NCBI GenBank assembly: GCA_002104905.1 | Contig: MCFE01000217.1 | Span: 60,918 to 124,917, forward strand | Direction: 5' to 3' | Length of the DNA: 64,000 nucleotides | Origin: Basidiobolus meristosporus CBS 931.73 | Taxonomy: Eukaryota > Fungi > Basidiobolomycota | In this document: positions 17,491 through 64,000 of the stretch, in pieces | Numbering within the stretch: the stretch's first letter is position 1 | Layout of the letters: each line of letters begins with the position of its first letter | The notes under the pieces: generated by a model | Seen by the model: the letters and a program-made list of their open reading frames with translations, nothing else | What the model was told of the DNA's origin: nothing | Databases searched by the model: none | Made by a program: the position numbers and the translations under genes

Positions 17491-17505
17491 ACAAGGCTCA
17501 TAATC

Positions 17506-17855
17506 TGTTGCAAGAGTCTTCACGATATTGGAAGCAACCTGGGAGGATAAGTGTATTATGCAGGTTGTAGTTAGTGATTTATTGAATGTAAAAGTAGTAT
17601 TTATACTTTTACATGGTAGTGGCATTACAAGTATGTAGAGCAGGTCAAGGAAAGTCCCAAGAACATGTGTGCAAAGTTTGGTGCTGTATGGATAACTTTG
17701 AGAATGTTCATGTTCTGAAGACCTGATATTTTGGTGAAAATATTCCAAGTAAATCCCAACCAGGAATTTAGTCATTTTTCCCTAGGACTTGAAGGGAATG
17801 ATCTAAGCAACTAAGTTGGGTGAATATTTTGGTGGAATTACAAATTTTTACAATA
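17506..17855 (-). mobile_element. Copia family-A LTR with decayed PBS at 17494-17505; internal region absent
   Basis: 350 bp, similar to 6999-7346. The minus strand reads ...caaca followed by gattatgagcct. Confidence 0.8.
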
Positions 17856-17879
17856 GTTTCTGCCTGCTTGTCACTTGCC

Positions 17880-18620
17880 AGCACTCTTTCAGCCCCCTGG
17901 CATTTCTTTGTCACTTGTTTGGAGCTGTTTGCCCTGCTTGTGACAGGCTCCTAAGGCAGGAGCCACTTTTTGTAGTGGTGCCCTAGCTCTTTGTCTTCTT
18001 TTTATGATCATTTCTGCAATTCTTGAGATACTTTATTAACATTTTTATGCTGGCCCAAAACTAGTTTGTATATATGAATCTAGGGTATTGCTCATGGAGC
18101 AAGTCAAGTACATTCTACCTGGCCCTGAGCTCCTAATGGTCCCATGGTGTGCTGGCCCTGAGGCAATGGCATACTCAACTTTTTGTAACCACTTAATATT
18201 GGCCAACTTTTTATTGTTGCCCTCAATGGCTTTTGTGATGTTCAATGTTTCTCAGTCTTTGGGCTCTGCCATAAACACCACATCTCTCCCTCCCATGCTC
18301 TGATAGGCACTCTGTAGGTATTATCTTTGGGCACTGCTACTTTATCTCAAAGACTGTACAGTCTCCCTCTGCTGTTACACTAGGATATTGCTCAACTCTG
18401 GTCTGCAACACTGAGCCACCTGGGTTTCTTCTTTGCAGCCCAGATACTGTATTTACTACCTGGGATATTGATTGCCCTACATATTTTCCCTGGTCATCCT
18501 GTCCCTGGAATGCTTCATGATTTCTCTTGGCATTGTATCTATCCTATTGGTCACTGCACCTAACTTGCCCCATGATGCTTAGGTGTGAGATGATAGCATA
18601 CCTGATAATACTAGCAGTTG
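17880..18620 (-). pseudogene. Third, more diverged ORF-B fragment
   Basis: The minus strand gives WDH.ELRARQNVLDLLHEQYPRF...FWASIKMLIKYLKN, matching the ORF-B core at 13553..14065. Confidence 0.65.
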
Positions 18621-18774
18621 AGATGTTATGGCTATCATTTGCTAGTCTTCAACCACAGGTGCTGAGTTTACTAAATCCACATCTGCCTGTGCATTTGGGC
18701 AGCTTGCAGCTCTGCAGAGATTCCAGTTGCCATCTTGATTAAGAGCTTGAGGTGTTCTAATTATAACCTTCAGT

Positions 18775-21700
18775 CCCTATGAAATATATTTTGGTTTTGC
18801 AGGTGGATCCAATCCAGATCAGCCATCAGGACCCTGTTAGGAGACTGCTATAATACTAGCAATTTGGAGTTAGTGACCCTCCTATCAATCTTATAACAGG
18901 ATCACAACAGTGTTTTACTAATTTTACTACCAAATAAAGTGATAAAACTTCACAGGGTTTGATTAGTACTGTGACAATAATTGCATGGTATTGTAGCAGT
19001 CTTATTGAGCTCTACAACTATTGTAAATGGATCCATCTGGCCAGGTCATCTAATTGCCTTATATGGCAAGAAACTCAATGGTATTTTAACAAGCTCTGAG
19101 AAAAACTCTGATGGCATTATATTGGCAATATGGTGGCCTACAGCTGGTTCTGTATAATGCTACTGTACCAACTTACCCAAATGGTGTTTCCTTCATCTAC
19201 CTCCCCTTGTGCTAATCCTATATTCCACTGTAGAATACCCCTCTTTATTTGCTTACCCACTACTACCTTGGGTATTCCACATATAATTTGAATAAAAAAA
19301 ATATGGCCTCTTGCTTACTAACCTTTACAAATACATACCCCTGCCGCAAATGACATACTTCTATCACCTCAACTTTACAGCTTTTTAGTGTGATACTTGC
19401 AAAGTTGTCATAAACCTTGTACTGCTGGTAGCATATACATCTTTTAAACTTATGCTTGGCTGCTGCCACTTCTGCCATAAACACTTGCTCAATATTCACA
19501 AAGAACTTCTTGGTATTTAGCCAATATAGTCCTTCTCCCTATTGGATTCTAGTCCCCATTATAGGTGTGCTCTGGCTCTTATTTGTGTGAATTCCATATT
19601 GAATGGTGTAGAAGTTGGTTTGCAACCAAGAGAAATCTGGCATACCTTGGTAGAGTTATCCCATTGAAAATTTGTTGCTTGTTGCACCCAACTCAGCTTT
19701 GCATTACTTAGCTGATTACCCATGCAGTGGGGCTGCTTAGCTTCTTAATGCCATAGGCATAGGTGTCTCCACATGCACATTTGTCCTCAGTATTTTCCAA
19801 CTCTTCCTGGTTGTCCTCAATCAGCCAACTCATCACATCCATGACAAAGCAAAGGTAATATTCTTGATGAGATTGGGATATAGTAGTACCTGCAACTTGA
19901 CTTGTCTTCCTATCTCCCTACACTTCCACTCTATAGGAAACTCCCAAAAGGTGAAGCAAGGCGCAATATTCTCCACACACCATGCAAGATGGAGTAGTGA
20001 ATGCATACAGTAGTGGCAGAGATCTTCATGTTCAGCTTTATGACTGTAGTATAGCTGCTCAAATTCCGTCACAAACTCCTTGCATAACAGCTGTAGATAT
20101 GTCAAGTTGGCATTGGTGATCTGCTTCTGGATAAATATTCCTACAATGTCTATGTATGACTCCCAATGCTTCCAATGTTCTCTTAGTAGGAATGGCTTCA
20201 GAACACCACTTGAATAAATACATATCCAGTTCATCCAGTCTTTGCATTTGTATTGTTGCATATGTGTAAGAATATTATTGGAGCCTGTGAGAAGTACTTA
20301 GGGTAGTGGATTCTCTGTAATATTTTGCCATTTCTTTCAAATTTCTCCGGTATCTTGAAGGGCTCATTTAGCTTGAAATGCCCCATGTACAACCTGGTCA
20401 TCAGTATAGAGATATCACTGAAAAGCAAATGCATTGCTCCCAGTGGAAAGCTTTTGCTCCAACAGATACCCTCTATCTTAAGTATCTCTGGTTTCCAATT
20501 GATTCCATATTCTGGCCAATGGCTTATAGCTTGCCAACTTTGCTGCAATTGCATGCTGACTTCTCTATATTCTCTCTGTGGAAAGATGATGTTCTTAGTG
20601 CTAGTATTTGGGTAGTAGTAATGTGTGTGAGTTATGAAGTAAATCCCCAGGATCTCACACATTCAACAGCAATACCATCCATTGTGCCTGGAAAAACCAG
20701 CTACCTTGCTGATGGCTGGGGTGTCTCCAATGCAGATAATAATATGTGCTTCATGGCTAAGAGGCTTGCCACAATAGCCACATGGTCTTTTTTCTCTTCT
20801 CTTACAGCATTGAGTCAAAGTAGTCTTGTCCATGGGTAAATAGTCTGACCTTTGACAATGTCACGCTTTTATATCACTTTTTGGTCAGTACCCAGGTAAA
20901 TTTAAGACAGTCTTGTACTTCAGACATTGCACCTACATGAATGTAGATTTAATGATGACCCACCATAGTAAGCATTATACATAAAGCTGTGGCACCACAT
21001 ACACCCATATATGTAGCACTATTTGCCCTTTGGCATGAGCCAGCTTCATATATATGCCACCAAATATAAAGCACAATTGTCTGGTTCTCAACCAAACCCC
21101 TCAACTGATGGCAACAGAAGAATGATTGAACAACAGCTTGCTTTGACATTCAGTGCAACAAGCAGTGCTACATCCAAAAAGGCCATGTTGACAGTGTGCC
21201 CACTGAAGGTATTAATGCTGACTCCTCAGGCTCACAGTCAAGTAGGCAATTGAGAACCTAGGCAGACAAGTAGGCAATTGAGAACCTTTGGTAGAGCTAC
21301 AAGCAGACCATTATGCTCAGGCAGATGAGAATGTAGCAAATGCATTACCCTCAGTTGAAGACTAGCAAGTGGCCATCATAACATCATCACCACACATATT
21401 AGCAAGTACATTGCAAGCTCATACCAAAGCATTAATGAAGCAATTAGGTGCAGAGGCTGATAGGATAGATGCAATGGCCCAGAGAAATCAGGATATAGTC
21501 TAGAAACAAAATGAGCAGATAATATGTGTAGAGCAATTAATATCCAGGTAGAGAAAGTAGTATCTTTGCAGCAAAGAAGGAACTCAAGTAGATCAATATT
21601 GCAGCCAAGAATTGAGCCATTTCCCATAGTAACAGCCAAGGAATATTGTACAGTCTTTGAAGCACAACAACAGTGCCCAAAGATAAAGCCCACAGAAAAA

Positions 21701-23510
21701 CCTATCACAGCATGGGAGGGAGACAATGTGGTATTTATACCAAAGCCCAAAAATCAAAAGACATTGAAGATCTGTGAAGCTGTTGAGTGCAATAATGAAG
21801 TGTGGGGAAATATTCAAGAGGCTGTCAGAAGTCTAGCACACCATCACCCTAAGGCCAGCATACCATGGGACCATCAAAAACTCAAGGCCAAACAGAATGC
21901 ACTTGACTTGTTCCATGAGCATTATCCTGGATTCAAATGGGCAATTGGATTTTGGGCCAGCATTGGTATGCCAAGAAGCTATCAGTGGCAGATGAACAAT
22001 GGTACCATGGCTAAAAACTGGCAGCTTCCTCAAGAGCCTGTAACAAGGAGGGTCCAAAGCTCCAGTCAAGCAACAAGGAGATGTCAGGTAGCTGGAAGAG
22101 TGCCAATTAGGGACAAGCAGGCAGACACAGATTAGCCAGCACAACATTTATCAAGGAAAGAGTGTAGTACTATTCAAGAAGCACTCACTCAAAGTAGGAG
22201 TGAAGGACCTGGCAGTGATAAAAACTAGTGGCTTTTACAGGAGCCCATTACAACCACAGCTGAGAGTTCAAAACAAGCAGAAAAGAAACATCAGGTTGCC
22301 AAAAGAGTACCAGCAAGGGACTAGCAGGCTAAAACAGATGTGTCAGAGTAGAATTTATCAAGGAAAAAATGTAGTTCATTACAAGAAGTATTCAGACAAA
22401 GTAGCAGTGGAATACCTGGCAGTGATAAAGGGAAAGGTAAAGGGAAAATGTCTACCCAGTTCTGATATAGCAATGCATGCAAAAAAAACTGCAGTTCTTG
22501 CCAATTAACGCTGTAAGCCTGGAGCACACTGAATCCCTTCATATTCAAGAAGGATTACCAAAAAGAAAACAGCTGTTCTCACAAGAGTTGGAAGCACAGC
22601 CAGCTGAGCTACACTCCTGCAAGGTAGATGAGTTTGCAGGAAAAGGCAATTTATTTACCACAGCCTCCACATCCTCAATTGTTGACAGAGTGGAGATCCC
22701 ACGGACAGACAAGGCTACAATGTCAAGAACTCATAAGACTATCACAATGCCTTCAGTGGAGTTTAGAACATTAGTAGGCACACCAAGAGGTTGCAGCACT
22801 TCTTCATGAGCAGTGCTCAAGAAAATGCACTTGAGTGTTGCAAGGATTTATTGCAAAGACTCTTGGATGAGGTACCAGACCTTGCAGTGCTGGCTGAAGA
22901 CCAGGATGTGTTGGAACCAGTGAATGAACAGTGGCATAAAGCCATTGGGTTCCCACCAATGTTGTAGAACCAGAGCGTTACAGCAGATATACTTATTGAG
23001 TGGTGGATTTTAATGAAGTTACTTGTTGAATGTGGGGTTGGGCTTAATGTTAGTGTAGGGTATAGGGACTTGTATAGGCCAATACTGTTGAAAATATTGG
23101 ATTAGTTGGTAACATTCTGCAGCTAAAAATTTACTTAACAATTCTGGACTAGGCTAATTGAGGTACAGCTGAAGTTTCAACAGAAATAAATTGGTTTGTG
23201 TGCATGAAAAGTATGAGAAATGGTTGAGTCAGAGTATGAGAAAAAGGCAATAGCCAATCAATGCCCACAAACATAGGATGTGATAGAGTGTCTGGGATCA
23301 GAAAATGAGCAAATTGGCAGGGAACCAATCAAATGCCACTTATATGCCATTGTGATGAAAAATTTTGATAAGTTTTTTGTGAAAACTTGGGTGCAACTAT
23401 TTTTCAACAGTCCCTGGATGGTGTCCTGATGGGATCATTACCCCTTAGTCACTGGACTTTAACTTTGTGACAGCCTTTTGATGGGATCACTAAAATAACT
23501 TTTCATAGGG
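18775..23510. mobile_element. CMC/CACTA element copy 2 with CCCTA termini: transposase on minus (~19000-20900), ORF-B on plus (~21300-22970)
   Basis: CCCTATGAAA at 18775 and its inverted complement TTTCATAGGG ending at 23510 fit the CMCWR terminus. The internal sequence is the reverse complement of copy 1. No clean TSD is visible. Confidence 0.75.
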
Positions 23511-51107: not shown

Positions 51108-54100
51108 ATGACCGAGTGCTCTATAAACCAATTAGAAGACAGTAATATTCAAAGCCTTACTCATAACTCTGGGGAGTTTTGGGACTCGCAAAAGCACTCC
51201 TCCAAGACTCCTTTACCATACAGCCTGGAGAATATACACCCAGACGATGCTAAAGATAAAGTTTTCGCTGCCATACTAAAGGCGTTGGTTGTGATGGATA
51301 ATAAGCCAAGCTCTCCAAAGGAGCTCGCAAACTGCATCATGAAGCACAAATTCACCATACTAGGGTAAGTTTGAGCAATACATTTGCTTTTAAAAATACG
51401 CTCCTTCATTTTAGCTTATTTAACACCCTCTCTAGTAAGGCAGCCTTGTGGATATTTGTTTTAAATAAATGCAAGGGTGACTTGGGCTTTGACACTTAGT
51501 ACTTTATTTTACTAACTTCTTTCTAAATGATAGTGGCGCCACACCGTACGCAACCGTATCTTCCCGGATATCACAACACTTTAAGCGGGCCGCCGAGCAT
51601 AAGCCTCCACGTCCTCCTCTACTGGCGCGTGTAGTGGACGAAGTGCACTCACGGAAGATTCATTATTACATCGCTGGTGGCAGTGTCCCACAGAGCAAAC
51701 GGAGCGATCCTGTGTGCTCACCTCAAAAAGCGCCAGCCTCTCTCAAAGAAACGAATGCTGTACAGGGCGGTTACCCAAAGTTGCGAATTCGTCTGAAAAG
51801 ACGAAAGAAAGCCAATGAACGTACTGCTCACGTGATGAAGAAGCAAAAAGCAGTTTTGTCTGGAACGAGGCCAGGCATGGGCAAAGGAAAGTGGGTTCCT
51901 CGGACTGAACCAGCCAACTGCATCAAGTCTTACAGCGCAGGTAGCTCGGAAGATGGGAGCGATGCTGACATCGATGCAATCGGTCCTGATTCTGAGCAGG
52001 AGTTTGAGGGTGACATCGCCCGCAGCCACCCGGCTAGCGGCAAGCGTGGCATGTCTTACCATTCGGAGCTCTCCTCTCATGGTACTCAGACTGGCTCCAT
52101 TTCGGTGGACGCATACGATGCAACCACGTCTATGTTAGGCTTGACAAGTGATGCCGAGTATAGTGACTATTTTGAGGAGATGATGAACGGCGACTTGTGC
52201 ATTGATGACGATTCTCCTATCGTCAAACTAGAGCCAGATTCGGCATCTTCGCCTCTCTTTCACCGCTCTCAGCTCGATTCAGTAAACAGCCCTACATACG
52301 ATCTCGGCACCTCCACTTCGTCCACTGTTACCCCTGATCCCCCTGTTCATAAAGAGGTCGGAGTAGATCTCGCGCCAGGAACCAATCTCCTGACCCCGGA
52401 TACAACGTCGCTGTTTGAGCGGGAGCTGGACACGCACCTTATCCCCAGCTTTGGCGACGAATTTAACGAGGATTCACCTTTGCTCTCCAAGAACGTTTCT
52501 TATGTCCCTCTCATGGAGCTAAACAATCCGGAGACCATGCCAGTATCAGAGTTGGACGAACTATTGAATGGGTCTCCTCGTACCCATGACTCGAGTCCTA
52601 AACGCCTATTCGGCTCACGTGACAAGGGCATGACCAAACGTACACCAAACCACGAATTCAGTAGATTTGAAGAGAATCATGACCACAAGGTCCCCTCTCG
52701 AGAAGACGAGATTGCTGATGGTGAGTTGGCTTCATTCAATGTGAAGTCCGATGTAGTGGGAATGGATCTAGACTCTAGATCGTCGGATGGTTCCCCAAAC
52801 CTCTCCCAAGACGGGTCATTTGGAACGATGTCAGTGGATTCCGAACGGACGCCTGTTCATGAAGATAGCACTACCCAGGCCACATCCATGGAAGGTACAG
52901 AACTCCTAAACGAGTCCAACCCGGTGCTGATAGATGCAGAGGCCAAGGCGCCCATGGTTGTGGTCAAGGTTTACTCGAATGTAAGTGTGTATGAGACTGT
53001 GCTCCCAGACACGCAATTGAGGCTACTTCGCTTTAAATCCAACGTTCCAGTCGAAGACTCTAACTCTCGACACAAAAAGTCTATGGTTATGCTTGAAGAA
53101 GACCGCCACAAGGATTTTTGCAACGCCAGCTTGTTGAGGAAAGCCGCCCAGCCTTATGTTGGTGACGGCAAACTTGAAAGCGATGATGGAAACACAAGAT
53201 TTGTCGTCATACGAAATGGCCCTGCTGAATGTCGTGGGGTGTGGTAAGTTCATCTAGCATAGAGGTTCGTGATAATTTGGATATACTAAGCTTAAATTCC
53301 TACGAAATAGGGTTTCCCTAGACCGGGCCCGGCATTTAGTGGAGGAGTATGGAATGCAAAATGTGCCGCATATTCAGAAGTTGTTGAGTGATGCTCCTCT
53401 GGACCAACGATACGGTATGCACCACAAGAGATTTCATGTCGAGCCCGGTTTACTTACCATCGCCACCCCTAGATTTTTCCGAGTCTTCTATGGATCCATC
53501 GGAGATTGACAAGCATCTAGTGGAGCTAAGTGGAATCCTCCAAAATGCGGTATCCGAATACAGCCTTTCGCAAAAGAATCGCACAACTCCTAAATCCGCA
53601 TGCAATTCGAATCACGACGAGAATACCTTTTCCGAACCTCATATTGAAAAGGAGTCGATGGAGTCTGCCAACCCAAGTCACATGGGCGACATTGATCCTC
53701 ATGCGTTCATCAGCTTAGATGAAGACGACGAAGATCAAAGCCACATGCAATGCCATGAAGACGCAAAAACTTGTGATTCATCACCCAGTTCGACAGCTTC
53801 AGGTGGTGAAGGTGACAGTGAGGCCCTTGAGGATATTACGGACGAAAGAAAAGCTTTCATTACCACTCAATCTCCCACTACCCCAACAATTTATCTCACG
53901 GTCATTGAGTCTGTTCCTGTCTATGTGACCTATATATCCAAAGGCGCTGGCAGCAACGAAACTTTTCAGCTAATGCGTCGCTTCGATTCTGGCTACGTTA
54001 ACGGAACCAAACTCCTCATGGCTGGCGGTGTGGAAACCGAAAGTGAACGAACGATCGTGCTGAGCCTTGAGGTTGGCCGAGTTCGTATCCGTAAACCAGA

Positions 54101-54674
54101 GAGCAAGCTGTTTGGTACCTGGTAAGCTAAGTCCCTTCAAGGTTGAAATGTCGTCCGACAAATACTAACGTAGAATAATACAATAAGGATCCCGTTACCC
54201 CGAGCTCGAGCTTTGGCCTCGACATGCTCATTACAGCATAAGCTTGGCCCATTCCTGGACAACAACTTGCCATCCTATTTCTCAACACCGCTCCCAAGTT
54301 CAATCACCACTGCGAGGCCAATGCGTCTTACATCCCGCTTACATCAGGTACTAAAAGCAAAAGACTTGTCTTTAAACACCCGAACCACAATAGGCTCAAG
54401 CGCTGGAGTTTCTCCACAATCTTTGCACCCTTCAAAAAATTTCCTCTCTGGTCCCAACTACCATATTTACCAAATCCTAGGTCTTCAGGGCTCCAAGCAA
54501 TCTAAGAGTGCAGCTTTAAGTGGGCTATTTGGAGGGCCGGGTGTGGTTGGATCCCATGACGATAAGAAAGGAAGTCGATGGTTGAAGAAAGTCAGATCCA
54601 GATTTGGCAACACCAAGCGTTCTGTGAAGGGATCCTGCGAAGAGCATGGCAACTATCAGAAATGTCCGATATGA
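51108..54674 (+). CDS. Putative transcription/chromatin factor: N-terminal winged helix (GDS1/HARE-HTH-like) plus two KilA-N/APSES-like domains
   Basis: Exons 51108-51364, 51534-53243, 53311-53414, 53473-54121, 54188-54674. DKVFAAILKAL..KPSSPKELA..ILG|GATPYATVSSRISQHF. CNASLL...RGVW|VSLDRARHL. MRRFDSGYVNGTKLL...GTW|IPLPRARALA...LGPFL. The 3' end is less certain. Confidence 0.8.
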
Positions 54675-55133
54675 GCCAATTCGATATCGAAGGACCCAGT
54701 CATGTTAAACCTCGATTCTGAAACTGACATTGAAATTTGAGCAAGTGATTAAAGCAAGCACCACCCAGATGTTGAGTGGCTCCGTACAATCAAGGTGATC
54801 ATCCGATCCCAGCACATCAACCGTTGGTAAGATTCAGTACACATTCCGGACTGGTTGTTCTGAATCCGTGTTTCCAGTACTCCGACCAATCAAAAAGATA
54901 CGACATGTGCGAAGACTGGTATTTGCCTGAATGATCTCCGCTCCTATTACTCCTTACCTGGTAGCCATTTCGTCAAAGCAGTATTTTAGTATGTATATAA
55001 GTCCAACCCACTATGCTCCCCATGTATTTTTTTGTCAATTTAATATACACTTAATATATCACTTCGCCCGGATAGTGAGTTGATGGCGACTGCGAACATT
55101 TATATAGTACGAGGTAAAGGGGGGACGAAACAG

Positions 55134-55148
55134 CTCGGCCATCTTGCC
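55134..55148 (-). pseudogene. 5' 15-nt stub of tRNA-Leu(UAG) at the array boundary
   Basis: The minus strand reads GGCAAGATGGCCGAG and then unrelated sequence. It matches 58769-58783. Confidence 0.85.
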
Positions 55149-55684
55149 ATGTCTTTTCTCCAGGTACACAGTACGCTAGGGATATAGCTGAAATTAGTGG
55201 TATTAGTAGTATTACACCTGCTATCCGACACTAAATCAAAGCCACTTCCAGACATGAATGCATACTACCATCATTGAAGGTGACCAAAATCCTGGGTGCC
55301 TATTACATATCAATGAATATGATGAGGAAACCTCGTTAGACTCGGCTATATGCTATTCCTGTATAATCAGAAGCTAAAAGGACATGCTCCTCCACTGATC
55401 AACAATGTTCTTGAGCTGCAGGCAAATGCTTCTTTTTTATGGGAGTAGGTTGCCAGTAATTGAGTGTTGATTTGGCAAAAATGAACATTCACTACAACAA
55501 CAGCTAGGATGTGAACATACGGCCTTCCTACTAGGAGGGGGTGCGATATCAACCAAGCTATCAAAATTCCGGAGACTCCATCCGCTGAAGTGTTTACTTG
55601 GCCCGCGGTTTGCTAATATGGAGGTTAAACAAACCCTGCACCAAGCCAAAAAAATATACAAAGCTTGATTTAGCATAAAATGAG

Positions 55685-55780
55685 TGCTCCAGGCGGGGAT
55701 CGAACCCGCGACCTTCGCGTGACTCAAGTATAGAGAGTTACTCTATAAGCACGACGCATTAACCACTTTGCTACTGGAGC
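55685..55780 (-). tRNA. tRNA-Ile(UAU): tRNA-Ile(UAU) with 23-nt intron
   Basis: GCTCCAG...TGGAGCA acceptor stem, CT-TAT-A loop, intron after position 37, GGTTCGATCC T-arm, T4 terminator. Confidence 0.95.
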
Positions 55781-56136
55781 GTCTTGGTCTAATGCTTCTA
55801 TGGGTTGAAATGATACCTACCCAAAACTTCCAAGCTCAAATATTAGTTGAGTATTTACACACCTCAAGGGTAAGTGTGTACCAAGATATCGATCTAAGGT
55901 GAGCCTCAACAAATAGACAACTTTCTATTCAAAGGGCACTACGTCAGGCTCATTTAGCTATTCAGTGTAGCATGCCATGCCTATGGAATGAGTAGGACTA
56001 GGTTGGTGATTAAAATTACACACCAACTGATAGACACATATAATTAAATTGGTAGCTGAAATCTGAGCCTAATGGTAAGTGTCTGTGTGAAGTAGAGTTA
56101 AACCAGCAACATCTGGATGAGAAGCTGAGTTTAAAA

Positions 56137-56207
56137 TGCATACTCGGGGAATCGAACCCCGGTCTACCGCGTGGCAGGCGGTAATTATACCACTAAACCA
56201 AGTATGC
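56137..56207 (-). tRNA. tRNA-Gly(GCC): tRNA-Gly(GCC)
   Basis: GCATACT...AGTATGCA, ACCGC-CTGCCAC-GCGGT anticodon arm, T4 terminator. Confidence 0.96.
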
Positions 56208-57156
56208 AACTGTGAACAACTTATCTCTTAAGGAACTCATTATCCCATATATTAAACAGCCGTATAGACAGCACTACAACACCCCATGAATTCAAGGCAG
56301 GAAAAACCGATTATTTGTGTAATGGATAATGACGATTCCTACCCCCTACGTACGAGTGAATCTAATATTCCACTTGTATATGCGGCAGATTGGCCCGCCG
56401 AGTTCATTTTTCATGGAGACAGGCCCAGAGAGATTAGAACAGACTCGTAGCTGAGAGGGGGTATTTTGGTAGGATTTAGGTGGTGTGAGGGGGACCGATG
56501 AGATCACCAGAGACACGCCAACAATAACGACACACACACATAGCATACATGACCAGGCCAATAGTTTAGTTGCGAGGGCGGGATGGGAGTGTGGCAAGTT
56601 CGTGGTTCAAATCCGACCCCCTCGTTAGGATTAGAAGAATCGGCAGTAAAATGAGCGGGTTATGCAGAAATTTTGCGCCAGAAAGAATGGGGGATCCGCG
56701 ACGGATAAGGGAGAGAAAATGGGAAATTTCCAGCAACCCTAAACCCTAAGAGCAGGAATTCAGGGGTTTGCACAGACACGACACTGTGGTGGCAGGATAT
56801 ACAGCAGACTCGTGGGGAATTTTTCTGGTTAGAACCCGTTCCGCACTTTATATTTTGGGAAGAAAGTCATCGGTTTGTAGTGTGAACAGCAGCAGCACCT
56901 ATGGACTGAAAAGGCCTCCACCGACCCCCTTCCTTGAAAGCGGTTGTTGTCACTGTAGCTGGGCGAGCAAGAAAGGGAAAGGAAATGACGAACCGAACCG
57001 AACCAAAATGAAACAACACATAGCTTAGCCGCCTCAGATGTGAAATCACCGTATCCCGAACCAGGCCAGGGGTTATGCACAGGCTACCCAGCAGCGGACC
57101 TTTTGGGGGGGGGGGAAACGGGCGAATGTATAAGAAAAGAAAAAGGGGAAAACAAG

Positions 57157-57238
57157 CGACGGCCACAGGATTTGAACCTGTGCGGGCAGAGCCCAACAGA
57201 TTTCGAGTCTGTCTCCTTAACCACTCGGACAGACCGTC
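57157..57238 (-). tRNA. tRNA-Ser(CGA): tRNA-Ser(CGA)
   Basis: GACGGTC...GGCCGTCG, ACAGA-CTCGAAA-TCTGT anticodon arm, long variable arm. Confidence 0.96.
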
Positions 57239-57513
57239 GTACTCACGAGCGATTGTTAATCGCGAATTTATTTCGAATTTCTTATCTGGGTTGAGACAAA
57301 GTGGTGATTCTTCCGAGTACCTTCACTCAATTTAGGGTTAGAGGGTAGATAATGCTAACATTGTAATGCAAGATCCCCAACCAGTCTTTGTAAAAGACAC
57401 GCACGCGTTGCATGGCTGCTTGGATTGCGAGAGACAAGATAAAGCAGATGACATAAGATTAGCCCAAATGGGGTATGGCAACTCAAAGTTAAATGCCCGC
57501 CTGCAAAAAGTAT

Positions 57514-57595
57514 TGACAAGAGTGGGGTTCGAACCCACGCCTCCGGAGAGACTGCGGCCTAAACGCAGCGCCTTGGACCACTCGGCCATCTTGCC
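57514..57595 (-). tRNA. tRNA-Leu(UAG): tRNA-Leu(UAG)
   Basis: GGCAAGA...TCTTGTCA, CTGCG-TTTAGGC-CGCAG anticodon arm, long variable arm. Confidence 0.96.
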
Positions 57596-58075
57596 TCACG
57601 CAGGGTGCTTGCTTGGCTCAACGGTCTCATGCTCCTTTCCTCAGGCAGCCTTCTCGGGTTACGAGCTATGAATGGGCACATCCAATTCTCAATTCCTAGC
57701 TAACTTATGCTATCGTTGGGGTTAGGGATATTTAGTGGTAGTACTAGCCACTATGGGATGCGCGCACAACAGAGAGCAAACATGACACATTCAATTCAAT
57801 TCAATTCAATACAATATTAGAACAACGCAAAGCCCGGTGGCTTGGGCTAAGTTGATTAGTGACAAATCTCCGCTCTTCTCCTCAAGACATTTCATAGTGA
57901 TGAATAAGCATCTGCATATTGCCGAGTGCCCACGCTAGAAGGGTTAAGTACATCAAGGTTTGTCTGAAAGAGGGAATAAAGAAATATATGATCCTAAAGA
58001 AAAAGGCTAACCTTCTCTTTTCGAGTGTGCTCATGGATTATTACAAGATATGAGCTAAAGAGATGCAAAACACAG

Positions 58076-58171
58076 TGCTCCAGGCGGGGATCGAACCCGC
58101 GACCTTCGCGTGACTGAAGTATAGAGAGTTACTCTATAAGCACGACGCATTAACCTCCTTGCTACTGGAGC
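58076..58171 (-). tRNA. tRNA-Ile(UAU): tRNA-Ile(UAU) variant with intron (D-loop AAGGAGG)
   Basis: Same as 55685-55780 apart from two D-loop changes and one intron change. Confidence 0.85.
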
Positions 58172-58416
58172 CCGTCGTTTACGGCTGATCGTTCTAAATT
58201 TCATTATTTTTTATAATGCATTTATCTCATAGATGTCAGCCGGTCTACTTTTTCCAAATGGAATATAGTTCTTATGATAGTACCTCACCTCATCCACGTG
58301 TTGATAAACATGAGCCGGGATTAGGGTTTCCCAGTAGTACAATGGTAGGTAGCCTACAAATTATTTATCGAAATATCACATAATCACACAGAATGTTTTG
58401 ATCTATTTACAAAAAT

Positions 58417-58498
58417 CGACGGCCACAGGATTTGAACCTGTGCGGGCAGAGCCCAACAGATTTCGAGTCTGTCTCCTTAACCACTCGGACAGACCGTC
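58417..58498 (-). tRNA. tRNA-Ser(CGA): tRNA-Ser(CGA), second copy
   Basis: Identical gene body to 57157-57238 with different flanks. Confidence 0.96.
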
Positions 58499-58701
58499 AT
58501 ACGGGAATCGGAGCAGATTTTAGAGACAACACTTCCATGGTGTAATGCATACAAGTGTAGTCAAAGCAAATAGCCTTGATGGCCACGAGAAAATAAAAGA
58601 TACTTTCCCCATTCGCTAGGCAAGCTCCAAACCATTGAAAATAGTTTACTGGTCAAGTCTAGCTACTAGGTTAAAAAGTATGGATAATACTTAAAAAGTG
58701 T

Positions 58702-58783
58702 TGACAAGAGTGGGGTTCGAACCCACGCCTCCGGAGAGACTGCGGCCTAAACGCAGCGCCTTGGACCACTCGGCCATCTTGCC
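58702..58783 (-). tRNA. tRNA-Leu(UAG): tRNA-Leu(UAG), second copy
   Basis: Identical gene body to 57514-57595 with different flanks. Confidence 0.96.
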
Positions 58784-59319
58784 ATGTCTTTTCTCCAGGT
58801 ACACAGTACGCTAGGGATATAGCTGAAATTAGTGGTATTAGTAGTATTACACCTGCTATCCGACACTAAATCAAAGCCACTTCCAGACATGAATGCATAC
58901 TACCATCATTGAAGGTGACCAAAATCCTGGGTGCCTATTACATATCAATGAATATGATGAGGAAACCTCGTTAGACTCGGCTATATGCTATTCCTGTATA
59001 ATCAGAAGCTAAAAGGACATGCTCCTCCACTGATCAACAATGTTCTTGAGCTGCAGGCAAATGCTTCTTTTTTATGGGAGTAGGTTGCCAGTAATTGAGT
59101 GTTGATTTGGCAAAAATGAACATTCACTACAACAACAGCTAGGATGTGAACATACGGCCTTCCTACTAGGAGGGGGTGCGATATCAACCAAGCTATCAAA
59201 ATTCCGGAGACTCCATCCGCTGAAGTGTTTACTTGGCCCGCGGTTTGCTAATATGGAGGTTAAACAAACCCTGCACCAAGCCAAAAAAATATACAAAGCT
59301 TGATTTAGCATAAAATGAG

Positions 59320-59415
59320 TGCTCCAGGCGGGGATCGAACCCGCGACCTTCGCGTGACTCAAGTATAGAGAGTTACTCTATAAGCACGACGCATTAACCA
59401 CTTTGCTACTGGAGC
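59320..59415 (-). tRNA. tRNA-Ile(UAU): tRNA-Ile(UAU) with intron, unit 2
   Basis: Copy of 55685-55780 at +3635. Confidence 0.95.
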
Positions 59416-59771
59416 GTCTTGGTCTAATGCTTCTATGGGTTGAAATGATACCTACCCAAAACTTCCAAGCTCAAATATTAGTTGAGTATTTACACACCTC
59501 AAGGGTAAGTGTGTACCAAGATATCGATCTAAGGTGAGCCTCAACAAATAGACAACTTTCTATTCAAAGGGCACTACGTCAGGCTCATTTAGCTATTCAG
59601 TGTAGCATGCCATGCCTATGGAATGAGTAGGACTAGGTTGGTGATTAAAATTACACACCAACTGATAGACACATATAATTAAATTGGTAGCTGAAATCTG
59701 AGCCTAATGGTAAGTGTCTGTGTGAAGTAGAGTTAAACCAGCAACATCTGGATGAGAAGCTGAGTTTAAAA

Positions 59772-59842
59772 TGCATACTCGGGGAATCGAACCCCGGTCT
59801 ACCGCGTGGCAGGCGGTAATTATACCACTAAACCAAGTATGC
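59772..59842 (-). tRNA. tRNA-Gly(GCC): tRNA-Gly(GCC), unit 2
   Basis: Copy of 56137-56207 at +3635. Confidence 0.96.
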
Positions 59843-60791
59843 AACTGTGAACAACTTATCTCTTAAGGAACTCATTATCCCATATATTAAACAGCCGTAT
59901 AGACAGCACTACAACACCCCATGAATTCAAGGCAGGAAAAACCGATTATTTGTGTAATGGATAATGACGATTCCTACCCCCTACGTACGAGTGAATCTAA
60001 TATTCCACTTGTATATGCGGCAGATTGGCCCGCCGAGTTCATTTTTCATGGAGACAGGCCCAGAGAGATTAGAACAGACTCGTAGCTGAGAGGGGGTATT
60101 TTGGTAGGATTTAGGTGGTGTGAGGGGGACCGATGAGATCACCAGAGACACGCCAACAATAACGACACACACACATAGCATACATGACCAGGCCAATAGT
60201 TTAGTTGCGAGGGCGGGATGGGAGTGTGGCAAGTTCGTGGTTCAAATCCGACCCCCTCGTTAGGATTAGAAGAATCGGCAGTAAAATGAGCGGGTTATGC
60301 AGAAATTTTGCGCCAGAAAGAATGGGGGATCCGCGACGGATAAGGGAGAGAAAATGGGAAATTTCCAGCAACCCTAAACCCTAAGAGCAGGAATTCAGGG
60401 GTTTGCACAGACACGACACTGTGGTGGCAGGATATACAGCAGACTCGTGGGGAATTTTTCTGGTTAGAACCCGTTCCGCACTTTATATTTTGGGAAGAAA
60501 GTCATCGGTTTGTAGTGTGAACAGCAGCAGCACCTATGGACTGAAAAGGCCTCCACCGACCCCCTTCCTTGAAAGCGGTTGTTGTCACTGTAGCTGGGCG
60601 AGCAAGAAAGGGAAAGGAAATGACGAACCGAACCGAACCAAAATGAAACAACACATAGCTTAGCCGCCTCAGATGTGAAATCACCGTATCCCGAACCAGG
60701 CCAGGGGTTATGCACAGGCTACCCAGCAGCGGACCTTTTGGGGGGGGGGGAAACGGGCGAATGTATAAGAAAAGAAAAAGGGGAAAACAAG

Positions 60792-60873
60792 CGACGGCCA
60801 CAGGATTTGAACCTGTGCGGGCAGAGCCCAACAGATTTCGAGTCTGTCTCCTTAACCACTCGGACAGACCGTC
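60792..60873 (-). tRNA. tRNA-Ser(CGA): tRNA-Ser(CGA), unit 2
   Basis: Copy of 57157-57238 at +3635. Confidence 0.96.
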
Positions 60874-61148
60874 GTACTCACGAGCGATTGTTAATCGCGA
60901 ATTTATTTCGAATTTCTTATCTGGGTTGAGACAAAGTGGTGATTCTTCCGAGTACCTTCACTCAATTTAGGGTTAGAGGGTAGATAATGCTAACATTGTA
61001 ATGCAAGATCCCCAACCAGTCTTTGTAAAAGACACGCACGCGTTGCATGGCTGCTTGGATTGCGAGAGACAAGATAAAGCAGATGACATAAGATTAGCCC
61101 AAATGGGGTATGGCAACTCAAAGTTAAATGCCCGCCTGCAAAAAGTAT

Positions 61149-61230
61149 TGACAAGAGTGGGGTTCGAACCCACGCCTCCGGAGAGACTGCGGCCTAAACG
61201 CAGCGCCTTGGACCACTCGGCCATCTTGCC
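61149..61230 (-). tRNA. tRNA-Leu(UAG): tRNA-Leu(UAG), unit 2
   Basis: Copy of 57514-57595 at +3635. Confidence 0.96.
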
Positions 61231-61710
61231 TCACGCAGGGTGCTTGCTTGGCTCAACGGTCTCATGCTCCTTTCCTCAGGCAGCCTTCTCGGGTTACGAG
61301 CTATGAATGGGCACATCCAATTCTCAATTCCTAGCTAACTTATGCTATCGTTGGGGTTAGGGATATTTAGTGGTAGTACTAGCCACTATGGGATGCGCGC
61401 ACAACAGAGAGCAAACATGACACATTCAATTCAATTCAATTCAATACAATATTAGAACAACGCAAAGCCCGGTGGCTTGGGCTAAGTTGATTAGTGACAA
61501 ATCTCCGCTCTTCTCCTCAAGACATTTCATAGTGATGAATAAGCATCTGCATATTGCCGAGTGCCCACGCTAGAAGGGTTAAGTACATCAAGGTTTGTCT
61601 GAAAGAGGGAATAAAGAAATATATGATCCTAAAGAAAAAGGCTAACCTTCTCTTTTCGAGTGTGCTCATGGATTATTACAAGATATGAGCTAAAGAGATG
61701 CAAAACACAG

Positions 61711-61806
61711 TGCTCCAGGCGGGGATCGAACCCGCGACCTTCGCGTGACTGAAGTATAGAGAGTTACTCTATAAGCACGACGCATTAACCTCCTTGCTAC
61801 TGGAGC
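61711..61806 (-). tRNA. tRNA-Ile(UAU): tRNA-Ile(UAU) variant, unit 2
   Basis: Copy of 58076-58171 at +3635. Confidence 0.85.
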
Positions 61807-62051
61807 CCGTCGTTTACGGCTGATCGTTCTAAATTTCATTATTTTTTATAATGCATTTATCTCATAGATGTCAGCCGGTCTACTTTTTCCAAATGGAATA
61901 TAGTTCTTATGATAGTACCTCACCTCATCCACGTGTTGATAAACATGAGCCGGGATTAGGGTTTCCCAGTAGTACAATGGTAGGTAGCCTACAAATTATT
62001 TATCGAAATATCACATAATCACACAGAATGTTTTGATCTATTTACAAAAAT

Positions 62052-62133
62052 CGACGGCCACAGGATTTGAACCTGTGCGGGCAGAGCCCAACAGATTTCG
62101 AGTCTGTCTCCTTAACCACTCGGACAGACCGTC
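62052..62133 (-). tRNA. tRNA-Ser(CGA): tRNA-Ser(CGA) second copy, unit 2
   Basis: Copy of 58417-58498 at +3635. Confidence 0.96.
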
Positions 62134-62336
62134 ATACGGGAATCGGAGCAGATTTTAGAGACAACACTTCCATGGTGTAATGCATACAAGTGTAGTCAAA
62201 GCAAATAGCCTTGATGGCCACGAGAAAATAAAAGATACTTTCCCCATTCGCTAGGCAAGCTCCAAACCATTGAAAATAGTTTACTGGTCAAGTCTAGCTA
62301 CTAGGTTAAAAAGTATGGATAATACTTAAAAAGTGT

Positions 62337-62418
62337 TGACAAGAGTGGGGTTCGAACCCACGCCTCCGGAGAGACTGCGGCCTAAACGCAGCGCCTTGGA
62401 CCACTCGGCCATCTTGCC
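62337..62418 (-). tRNA. tRNA-Leu(UAG): tRNA-Leu(UAG) second copy, unit 2
   Basis: Copy of 58702-58783 at +3635. Confidence 0.96.
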
Positions 62419-62954
62419 ATGTCTTTTCTCCAGGTACACAGTACGCTAGGGATATAGCTGAAATTAGTGGTATTAGTAGTATTACACCTGCTATCCGACA
62501 CTAAATCAAAGCCACTTCCAGACATGAATGCATACTACCATCATTGAAGGTGACCAAAATCCTGGGTGCCTATTACATATCAATGAATATGATGAGGAAA
62601 CCTCGTTAGACTCGGCTATATGCTATTCCTGTATAATCAGAAGCTAAAAGGACATGCTCCTCCACTGATCAACAATGTTCTTGAGCTGCAGGCAAATGCT
62701 TCTTTTTTATGGGAGTAGGTTGCCAGTAATTGAGTGTTGATTTGGCAAAAATGAACATTCACTACAACAACAGCTAGGATGTGAACATACGGCCTTCCTA
62801 CTAGGAGGGGGTGCGATATCAACCAAGCTATCAAAATTCCGGAGACTCCATCCGCTGAAGTGTTTACTTGGCCCGCGGTTTGCTAATATGGAGGTTAAAC
62901 AAACCCTGCACCAAGCCAAAAAAATATACAAAGCTTGATTTAGCATAAAATGAG

Positions 62955-63050
62955 TGCTCCAGGCGGGGATCGAACCCGCGACCTTCGCGTGACTCAAGTA
63001 TAGAGAGTTACTCTATAAGCACGACGCATTAACCACTTTGCTACTGGAGC
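62955..63050 (-). tRNA. tRNA-Ile(UAU): tRNA-Ile(UAU) with intron, unit 3
   Basis: Copy of 55685-55780 at +7270. Confidence 0.95.
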
Positions 63051-63406
63051 GTCTTGGTCTAATGCTTCTATGGGTTGAAATGATACCTACCCAAAACTTC
63101 CAAGCTCAAATATTAGTTGAGTATTTACACACCTCAAGGGTAAGTGTGTACCAAGATATCGATCTAAGGTGAGCCTCAACAAATAGACAACTTTCTATTC
63201 AAAGGGCACTACGTCAGGCTCATTTAGCTATTCAGTGTAGCATGCCATGCCTATGGAATGAGTAGGACTAGGTTGGTGATTAAAATTACACACCAACTGA
63301 TAGACACATATAATTAAATTGGTAGCTGAAATCTGAGCCTAATGGTAAGTGTCTGTGTGAAGTAGAGTTAAACCAGCAACATCTGGATGAGAAGCTGAGT
63401 TTAAAA

Positions 63407-63477
63407 TGCATACTCGGGGAATCGAACCCCGGTCTACCGCGTGGCAGGCGGTAATTATACCACTAAACCAAGTATGC
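63407..63477 (-). tRNA. tRNA-Gly(GCC): tRNA-Gly(GCC), unit 3
   Basis: Copy of 56137-56207 at +7270. Confidence 0.96.
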
Positions 63478-64000
63478 AACTGTGAACAACTTATCTCTTA
63501 AGGAACTCATTATCCCATATATTAAACAGCCGTATAGACAGCACTACAACACCCCATGAATTCAAGGCAGGAAAAACCGATTATTTGTGTAATGGATAAT
63601 GACGATTCCTACCCCCTACGTACGAGTGAATCTAATATTCCACTTGTATATGCGGCAGATTGGCCCGCCGAGTTCATTTTTCATGGAGACAGGCCCAGAG
63701 AGATTAGAACAGACTCGTAGCTGAGAGGGGGTATTTTGGTAGGATTTAGGTGGTGTGAGGGGGACCGATGAGATCACCAGAGACACGCCAACAATAACGA
63801 CACACACACATAGCATACATGACCAGGCCAATAGTTTAGTTGCGAGGGCGGGATGGGAGTGTGGCAAGTTCGTGGTTCAAATCCGACCCCCTCGTTAGGA
63901 TTAGAAGAATCGGCAGTAAAATGAGCGGGTTATGCAGAAATTTTGCGCCAGAAAGAATGGGGGATCCGCGACGGATAAGGGAGAGAAAATGGGAAATTTC

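Follow-up and report, generated by a model that had tools for sequence, protein, structure and literature searches.

The GenBank contig MCFE01000217.1 of Basidiobolus meristosporus CBS 931.73 ends in repeated cassettes of tRNA genes. This raises the question of whether a real chromosomal array is present and, if so, how it is maintained and what it does. The window analysed is a stretch of 64,000 nucleotides that is identical to the end of this contig, position 64000 being the contig's last. The explanation that best accounts for the whole, and quite probably the correct one, is an rDNA-like array on the chromosome, in which a homogenised 3,635-bp cassette is repeated in tandem in some 14–17 copies and raises gene dosage.

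The repeat unit and its tRNA genes

Self-comparison of the window at an offset of 3635 identified a 3,635-bp period that starts exactly at 55134 and continues through 64000. There are 0 mismatches between positions i and i+3635 in the 5,232 positions compared (55134–60365), which corresponds to 2.44 units. Because the repeat is perfect over 3.6 kb, an origin by chance is impossible. Since the public contig stops where the window does, the array extends beyond the 8.9 kb assembled. The assembled units are free of LTRs and other transposon insertions, and no short tandem repeats were found by Tandem Repeats Finder in 40000–64000, spacers included.

A total of 16 tRNA genes were found in the array, all on the minus strand, with seven in each full unit (Rfam, 52–66 bits against a threshold of 29; Table 1). 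Only four anticodons are represented per unit, with two genes each for Leu(UAG), Ser(CGA) and the intron-containing Ile(UAU), and one for Gly(GCC). Their B boxes are of the GGTTCRANYCC type, and every gene is followed by a T4–T5 run no more than about 10 nt downstream. The first-pass annotation, which described a head-to-tail unit without differences even in the spacers and seven co-oriented tRNA genes with their own T4–5 terminators, is confirmed on both counts. With default settings, ARAGORN wrongly assigns the intron-bearing Ile(UAU) to Ser(AGA) and does not call the variant copy; once introns are allowed for (-i), Ile(UAU) with a 23-nt intron is reported.

In six of the seven genes the A and B boxes and the terminator are intact, and these genes are canonical. 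The remaining Ile(UAU) gene has A14G and T16A in the D-loop/A box and one intron change (97% identity to the other Ile copy), is probably impaired judging from these changes, and is present in every assembled unit. The unit also contains a Leu-Ser-Ile sub-duplication, the two halves of which have unrelated spacers. A tRNA-derived SINE and retroposed tRNA copies were considered and rejected, as these are complete cloverleaf genes and whole spacers are copied with them. Retention of the Ile introns, together with the copying of non-genic spacers, indicates copying at the DNA level.

No RNA family was recognised by Rfam (E≤1) in the longest of the spacers. A 232-nt stretch of it (56841–57072) occurs at low depth in the RNA-derived contig set, which is of a type that would miss tRNAs. 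The single-copy flank contains K493DRAFT_33000, which is expressed, being represented in the RNA-derived contig set by a spliced contig with four GT..AG introns. It is convergent with the tRNA genes, and the array begins 166 bp past its 3' end. The array edge falls inside a tRNA-Leu gene, after nucleotide 15, and comparison at the junction found no homology between flank and unit. A 33-kb transposon nest is located 22 kb from the array. Degraded transposon copies elsewhere within the window are just 70–94% alike.

Table 1. Features of the tRNA array and its flank (window positions).
Feature	Position	Strand	Basis or remark
Flank gene K493DRAFT_33000, GDS1 winged-helix, single-copy	51108–54967	+	CDS 51108–54519; mRNA 3' end ~54967
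Assembled array part	55134–64000	-	2.44 units of 3,635 bp; 0 mismatches at offset 3635; reaches contig end
Unit 1	55134–58768	-	Phase fixed by array edge
Truncated tRNA-Leu(UAG), first 15 nt only	55134–55148	-	Array edge against unique flank; junction comparison
tRNA-Ile(UAU), 23-nt intron, canonical A box	55685–55780	-	Rfam 58.8 bits; ARAGORN -i; T4
tRNA-Gly(GCC)	56137–56207	-	Rfam 65.6 bits; ARAGORN; T4
Longest spacer, ~950 bp	56208–57156		No RNA-family match
tRNA-Ser(CGA)	57157–57238	-	Mature sequence as 58417–58498; Rfam; ARAGORN; T4 then T5
tRNA-Leu(UAG)	57514–57595	-	Mature sequence as 58702–58783; Rfam; ARAGORN; T5
tRNA-Ile(UAU) variant, intron	58076–58171	-	Rfam 52.1 bits; ARAGORN -i; T4
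tRNA-Ser(CGA)	58417–58498	-	Rfam 56.4 bits; ARAGORN; T5
tRNA-Leu(UAG)	58702–58783	-	Spans unit/unit junction; Rfam 57.3 bits; ARAGORN; T5
Unit 2	58769–62403	-	Identical to unit 1
tRNA-Ile(UAU), unit 2	59320–59415	-	Rfam
tRNA-Gly(GCC), unit 2	59772–59842	-	Rfam
tRNA-Ser(CGA), unit 2	60792–60873	-	Rfam
tRNA-Leu(UAG), unit 2	61149–61230	-	Rfam
tRNA-Ile(UAU) variant, unit 2	61711–61806	-	Rfam
tRNA-Ser(CGA), unit 2	62052–62133	-	Rfam
tRNA-Leu(UAG), unit 2/3 junction	62337–62418	-	Rfam
Unit 3, partial	62404–64000	-	Cut at contig end
tRNA-Ile(UAU), unit 3	62955–63050	-	Rfam
tRNA-Gly(GCC), unit 3	63407–63477	-	Rfam

Copy number in short-read contigs

Short-read contigs came from two separate sequencing runs, apparently of the same strain (0 differences from the window); these best-matching runs are possibly from the same project as the assembly. 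Flank depth is 100 and about 91 in the two runs and the spacer mean is 1,419 and 1,495, giving ratios of 14.1× and 16.5×, which are based on contig-mean word depths across the genome and are neither strict copy numbers nor single-molecule counts at one locus. Overall, the spacers are at 12–17× flank depth and are therefore not single-copy, which is the outcome of the read-depth check that the first-pass annotation had proposed. By this measure the genome total is about 14–17 cassettes (about 51–62 kb).

The flank/array junction is at flank depth and is crossed by a short-read contig without differences. The unit/unit junction, in which 13 letters of the unit end precede 55134, is at array depth in two runs. 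Only one variant within the array reaches at least 10% of depth in the short-read contigs, this being homopolymer length at 57104. Long-read polishing may account for some of the identity between the assembled units, though the short-read contigs agree with that identity. Taken together, the perfect repeat, the depth and the unit/unit junction support the view that the tandem array is real and that its tRNA cassettes are homogenised.

Probable dosage effect and homogenisation, and alternative explanations

Each cassette is predicted to contain seven independent RNA polymerase III genes, with internal A and B box promoters and their own T-run terminators, all of which would be transcribed toward the neighbouring protein-coding gene. 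The public assembly would have resolved 2.4 cassettes of an array of about 51–62 kb before the contig broke. From the pattern of identity, the cassettes may be kept alike by unequal recombination of whole units and by gene conversion among misaligned repeats. Homogenisation appears to work on the 3.6-kb register, because the spacers are as uniform as the genes, every assembled unit includes the probably impaired Ile(UAU), and between the two halves of the older Leu-Ser-Ile sub-duplication the spacers are unrelated. A higher, adjustable gene dosage would be the likely result, at about 30 gene copies for each of Leu(UAG), Ser(CGA) and Ile(UAU) and about 15 for Gly(GCC). No clear match between this dosage and demand is apparent, since in a sample of this window that is small (1,172 codons) the codons read by three of the four isoacceptors are in the minority (AUA 11% of Ile, UCG 16% of Ser and CUA 17% of Leu).

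It is unlikely that the array is largely a silenced reserve or neutral satellite, grown via unequal exchange promoted by the tRNA genes and adding little to the tRNA pool. The bias of the isoacceptors to minority codons would be in keeping with this, as would fixation of a probably defective Ile copy (A14G) in every assembled unit. Clustered Arabidopsis tRNA genes are largely silenced (Hummel et al. 2020, as cited in PMC13578239), the Ser-Tyr-Tyr and Pro clusters epigenetically, by DNA methylation. However, the six canonical genes have intact boxes and terminators, and gene sequences are conserved in a diverged relative, for example in a 96-nt Ile(UAU) contig with one difference.

A mainly structural chromosome element, be it centromeric, subtelomeric or a chromatin barrier, with tRNA supply secondary, is less likely again. 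It is suggested by analogy with Schizosaccharomyces japonicus, where tRNA arrays fill the centromeres, a centromere-like region and one subtelomere, and with other fission yeasts, where tRNA clusters are at CENP-A/heterochromatin transitions. The location of the Basidiobolus array, at a contig end with a transposon nest nearby, also fits. Yet this contig end is an assembly break and not a chromosome end, the array directly abuts an expressed gene, and its assembled units are free of transposon insertions. TTAGGG motifs are not significantly enriched (5 found, 2.2 expected, P=0.07).

Also improbable is that each lineage amplified the cassette just once and very recently, with neither a long-lived array nor continuing homogenisation. 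A very young duplication would likewise be expected to have zero differences between units, and the truncated tRNA-Leu at the edge resembles a single non-homologous breakpoint. Against this, the diverged relative (one run) has a flank with 231 differences in 1,647 positions (about 86% identity) at a depth of 15.3, and its homologous spacers, 88–95% identical to those of the window, are each a single contig at a depth of 323–401, about 24× its flank. Recent amplification would require the same cassette to have been amplified independently twice, and an inherited array that is still turning over is therefore the more parsimonious explanation. Units that are uniform within a genome yet diverged between genomes are the signature of concerted evolution. 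The 14–17 units estimated by depth and the finding of the same amplified, uniform spacers in a second genome fit concerted evolution, which the first-pass annotation had proposed beside recent amplification, naming a comparison with relatives among its checks.

Tandem repeats commonly shed circles, and extrachromosomal 3.6-kb circles or multimers would equally give head-to-tail junctions and high depth; that they account for most of the extra depth in place of a chromosomal array is very improbable, given that the assembly connects unique flank to at least 2.4 units and that short reads confirm the edge. False duplication of a single-copy cassette by the long-read assembler, for which a contig end is a common place, is contradicted by the short-read depth and by the unit/unit junction at that depth in two runs, and has next to no likelihood.

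Relation to other tRNA gene arrays

The homogenised array of tandem tRNA cassettes in Basidiobolus belongs to a kind already described in fission yeast, amoebae, frogs, plants and humans. It has at least two different tRNA genes per unit arranged head to tail, many copies (depth being the proxy), units that are near-identical, spacers included, while the relative differs, and Pol III genes that look functional from their sequence, one of the seven being doubtful. A 2026 review still describes fungal tRNA genes as almost exclusively dispersed singletons, with S. cerevisiae the sole fungus sampled (PMC13578239). The first-pass annotation knew of no such array in fungi, which is out of date. Of the 3,885 tRNA genes in the telomere-to-telomere assembly of S. 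japonicus, most are in tandem units of several tRNA genes, among them 5.6-kb units ×34, 6.4-kb units ×46 and a 575-kb subtelomeric array (bioRxiv 10.1101/2023.09.04.556195). S. japonicus already breaks the dispersed-singleton picture, and with Basidiobolus rDNA-like arrays would be known from two fungal lineages very distant from each other, which suggests a recurrent origin of the arrangement and its concealment by collapse in assemblies.

Reads matching the reference Ser(CGA) anticodon are at roughly 250–370× flank depth, and the 96-nt Ile(UAU) contig of the relative is at about 155× its flank depth. On these depths the genome appears to have Ser(CGA) and Ile(UAU), at least, in hundreds of copies, and the array would be one of many. 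It is conceivable, if somewhat short of an even chance, that most Basidiobolus tRNA genes (hundreds of copies per isoacceptor and thousands in total) are in many homogenised arrays that collapse at contig ends, as in Entamoeba and S. japonicus but arisen independently. Within such a set, the array of MCFE01000217.1 would stand for Leu(UAG)/Ser(CGA)/Ile(UAU)/Gly(GCC). In the public B. meristosporus assembly this locus is about six-fold under-represented, so that counts of tRNA genes or estimates of codon adaptation based on that assembly would be in error. With a marker inside the unit (the variant Ile), an edge inside a tRNA gene and a diverged relative, this is a convenient system for the concerted evolution of Pol III genes.

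The Entamoeba tRNA arrays are also tandem multi-tRNA units homogenised within species and attributed to concerted evolution, with a role at chromosome ends proposed but untested (Tawari et al. 2008, PMC2652664). Their units have up to 5 tRNA genes with complex short tandem repeats between them, whereas the Basidiobolus spacers have no tandem repeats (Tandem Repeats Finder, 40000–64000), and an array specifically of the Entamoeba type was rejected. Entamoeba also lacks telomerase-type telomeres.

In Xenopus laevis the array runs to some 150 copies, and its genes are in mixed orientations. The array of Basidiobolus differs from this animal array in having about 15 copies, all genes co-oriented, and isoacceptors duplicated within the unit. 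The Xenopus repeat is very similar in size and gene number, being a 3.18-kb head-to-tail repeat with 8 tRNA genes (Muller, Clarkson and Galas 1987, as cited in PMC1635290). The Arabidopsis Ser-Tyr-Tyr and Pro clusters and the human 1q23.3 tRNA VNTR are likewise copy-number-variable tandem units of a few tRNA families, the human unit being 7.3 kb and binding CTCF (PMC4041453).

Among fungi, S. pombe, S. octosporus, S. cryophilus and S. osmophilus have dense multi-tRNA clusters at their centromeres. These are syntenic, and have been proposed to favour recombination among the repeats and to serve as boundaries. They are, however, within inverted centromeric repeats, with spacers unconserved between species, and are not perfect head-to-tail arrays of one unit. 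Another fungus, S. japonicus, is like Basidiobolus in that its cassettes measure a few kb, carry several tRNA genes and are arranged head to tail, there in tens of copies; its arrays were collapsed in earlier assemblies and exposed by coverage. Its arrays are in centromeres, a centromere-like region and a subtelomere, are mixed with LTRs, and have units of 9–18 different tRNAs, some with 5S rRNA genes. The unit of Basidiobolus, which is of an unrelated lineage (Zoopagomycota), has instead seven genes, four anticodons and no 5S, in an array that abuts an expressed gene.

The repeat unit and its tRNA genes

Base-by-base self-comparison at an offset of 3,635 gives an unbroken identity that amounts to 2.44 head-to-tail copies with 0 differences. 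The onset of this identity is exactly the array start given in the first-pass annotation, and the 3,635 bp unit described there, without visible differences even in its spacers, is borne out by the comparison. Tandem Repeats Finder reports nothing for the array because its maximum period is 500.

A total of 16 tRNA genes were found in the array, all on the minus strand and scoring 52–66 bits against an Rfam threshold of 29, with seven in each complete unit. In default mode ARAGORN finds six genes per unit, one of them called as Ser(AGA); with intron detection it finds 7 out of 7, two being Ile(UAU) with a 23 nt intron directly 3' of the anticodon. The intron-containing gene is the usual eukaryotic form of this tRNA. 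In order of transcription the unit consists of Leu(UAG), Ser(CGA), a variant Ile(UAU), Leu(UAG), Ser(CGA), Gly(GCC), and Ile(UAU). A T4 or T5 run is present 3' of every tRNA gene, and the seven co-oriented genes with their own terminators noted previously are thus supported by Rfam, ARAGORN, and the check for T runs. There are only four anticodons among the seven, which corrects the earlier description.

The two Leu copies of the unit have the same mature sequence, as have the two Ser copies. The Ile copies have three differences, these being A14G and T16A in the D-loop (standard numbering) and one within the intron. A14 is nearly invariant among cytoplasmic tRNAs and falls within the A-box promoter, therefore the variant Ile(UAU), which is carried by all of the assembled units, is probably impaired. 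Likeness between the two Leu-Ser-Ile halves is confined to the genes, with the spacers sharing nothing. Either the duplication within the unit is therefore an old one, or its genes came together separately. Unlike these halves, the 3.6 kb register is perfectly uniform.

An Rfam scan of the unit at E≤1 identified the seven tRNAs and no other RNA family. Only short open reading frames, overlapping tRNA genes, occur in the unit, with none convincing in the spacers, and exact database look-up of two of them returned no record. Tandem repeats with a period of up to 500 were not found in the spacers by Tandem Repeats Finder. A public spliced model for a 55 aa protein, each end of which falls on one of the unit's two tRNA-Ser(CGA) genes, is probably spurious. 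TTAGGG/CCCTAA motifs occur 5 times in the spacers against 2.2 expected, which is not significant (P=0.07), and a link to telomeres was rejected. Within the longest spacer, a stretch of 232 nt is present with 0 differences as a low-depth contig in the RNA-derived run X3, where the other spacers are absent. This stretch has no Rfam match, nor a counterpart at ≥85% identity in the diverged relative described below; the contig may reflect weak spacer transcription or carried-over multi-copy DNA.

Copy number and the array edge

Depths are contig means, taken from contigs built out of public runs rather than from raw reads. X1 and X2 are two runs of one sample, apparently of the same strain, and their contigs match the window with 0 differences. 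In X1 the flank contig has a depth of 100 and the listed array-spacer contigs a mean of 1,419 (1,208–1,710), a ratio of 14.1; in X2 these are about 91 and 1,495 (1,346–1,800), a ratio of 16.5. The flank contig extends 28 nt across the array edge at flank depth, and a contig at array depth enters the array at its first base after 13 letters matching the end of the unit. The two types of junction are therefore both present, in roughly the expected proportion. False duplication during assembly, the artefact considered in the first-pass annotation, is ruled out by the spacer depths together with the unit-to-unit junction at array depth. The array is real, a homogenised seven-tRNA cassette of roughly 15 copies. 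Its size from depth is about 51–62 kb, where depth represents genome-wide copies and circles may contribute. A single variant reaches at least 10% of array depth, this being in the length of a C/G homopolymer in the long spacer. It could be a marker of 1–2 units or a sequencing error.

The window from 41108 onward is identical to the final 22,893 bases of GenBank contig MCFE01000217.1. The contig therefore ends at position 64000, the assembly having broken within the array. The locus is also of value as a warning that it is collapsed in the public assembly.

Read in the direction of tRNA transcription, the final unit stops after the upstream region and first 15 nt of tRNA-Leu and is followed by unrelated sequence. 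Older remnants of the array were sought and rejected, there being no homology to the unit in the flank or elsewhere in the window (55 kb). The array therefore meets the flank at a non-homologous breakpoint that lies within a tRNA gene. Had the first duplication come from exchange between two complete Leu genes, an intact copy of the gene would be expected to border the array, and the edge is not of this form. An expressed gene on the opposite strand (public model K493DRAFT_33000 on the same contig of B. meristosporus CBS 931.73) has its 3' end 166 bp before the array start; its nearest relatives, by protein search with its exons, are Basidiobolus proteins. This 3' end is set by a spliced contig from run X3, evidently an RNA run; the contig is identical to the window and has four GT..AG introns.

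The rest of the window consists of a 33 kb nest of degraded Copia-type and CACTA-type transposons (38–40% G+C), then a 22 kb gene island (51–55% G+C).

Coordinates of features in the window
Feature	Position (strand)	Observation
Transposon fragments	1–33000	Copia-type integrase, reverse transcriptase and protease; CACTA-type tnp2 transposase; copies 70–94% alike
Nested inverted repeats	12700–22950	Roughly 10 kb palindrome-like layout; probably two oppositely oriented transposon copies
Inverted-repeat pair within these	13681–14118 and 21543–21980	92%
Inverted-repeat pair within these	16204–16629 and 19852–20277	94%
Rise in G+C	about 32–34 kb	Sharp, to 51–55%, where genes start
Identity to contig end	41108–64000	
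GDS1 winged-helix gene (flank)	51108–54967 (+)	
tRNA-gene array	55134–64000 (tRNA genes −)	
Unbroken identity at offset 3,635	55134–60365	
tRNA genes with summed contig depth	56088–56280, 58457–58465	Hundreds to thousands x flank
Spacer stretch in X3	56841–57072	
Homopolymer variant	57104	Form longer by one base makes up ~13% of short-read depth in X1 and X2
55 aa gene model	57149–58492 (−)	

The array in a diverged relative

Run X5, labelled as the same species, is from another sample and study. Between its flank contig, of depth 15.3, and the window there are 231 differences in 1,647 positions. Four different spacers have homologous contigs in this run that are 88–95% identical to the window, each spacer being represented by one contig with a depth of 323–401, about 24 times that of the X5 flank. 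Both genomes therefore carry the cassette in amplified form, each with uniform copies, and the two versions have diverged. Such uniformity within and divergence between genomes is the classical pattern of concerted evolution, which the first-pass annotation had proposed alongside recent amplification. The X5 flank contig connects to tRNA-Gly through a weak joint of only 30 letters, a hint that the array lies at the same locus but with its edge elsewhere.

Protein searches with the flank exons for array sequence in relatives led only to two Basidiobolus ranarum contigs (L005 and L007; GCA_040143965.1). These have no tRNA and both end 170–280 nt past the orthologous flank gene, about where the array of the window begins. 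This is compatible with a break caused by repeats, and proves nothing. The two B. ranarum copies of the flank gene are diverged, with 62–71% protein identity to each other and to that of the window, and L007 has the gene order of the window (LRR gene, small gene, GDS1 gene).

The Ile(UAU) gene, used as query in two metagenome scans, gave 0 matches in the first and 4 unrelated contigs, with no arrays, in the second. One of these, from an ocean metagenome (L002, 3172–3463), contains a tight cluster of Arg(UCU), intron-containing Ile(UAU), and Lys(UUU) tRNA genes that is unrelated to the array; its Ile exons match the Basidiobolus ones exactly.

tRNA gene dosage and known arrays

Judged by sequence, the tRNA genes of the unit bear the features of active Pol III genes, and the array would raise tRNA gene dosage. 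AUA, UCG, and CUA are minority codons (in a sample of 1,172 codons from the window), which argues against a simple demand model. In Arabidopsis, clustered tRNA genes are silenced (Hummel et al. 2020, as cited in PMC13578239). Reads carrying the Ser(CGA) anticodon of the reference are at about 250–370 times flank depth, and the 96 nt Ile contig of the relative is at about 155 times its flank, both being rough values from overlapping contigs summed. Of the Ser anticodon depth, UGA makes up about 71% and CGA 29%. From the summed depths over tRNA genes, the genome seems to hold very large families of these genes, with Ser(CGA) and Ile(UAU), at least, numbering in the hundreds. The array is of value mainly because it may belong to a genome-wide organisation of tRNA genes in arrays, in a fungus of an early-diverging lineage.

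No published description of nuclear tRNA arrays was found for Basidiobolus or Zoopagomycota. The earlier view that no such array is on record in fungi is contradicted by the T2T assembly of Schizosaccharomyces japonicus, in which 3,885 tRNA genes are reported, most of them within tandem multi-tRNA units that lie in centromeres, in a centromere-like region, and in a subtelomere (bioRxiv 10.1101/2023.09.04.556195). Xenopus has a 3.18 kb unit with eight tRNA genes (as cited in PMC1635290), and arrays of the same kind are known from human 1q23.3 (PMC4041453) and from Arabidopsis (PMC13578239). Concerted evolution has been invoked for the tRNA arrays of Entamoeba (PMC2652664), the same process to which the pattern here points. 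The Basidiobolus array is a further case of an already known kind of tRNA-gene array.
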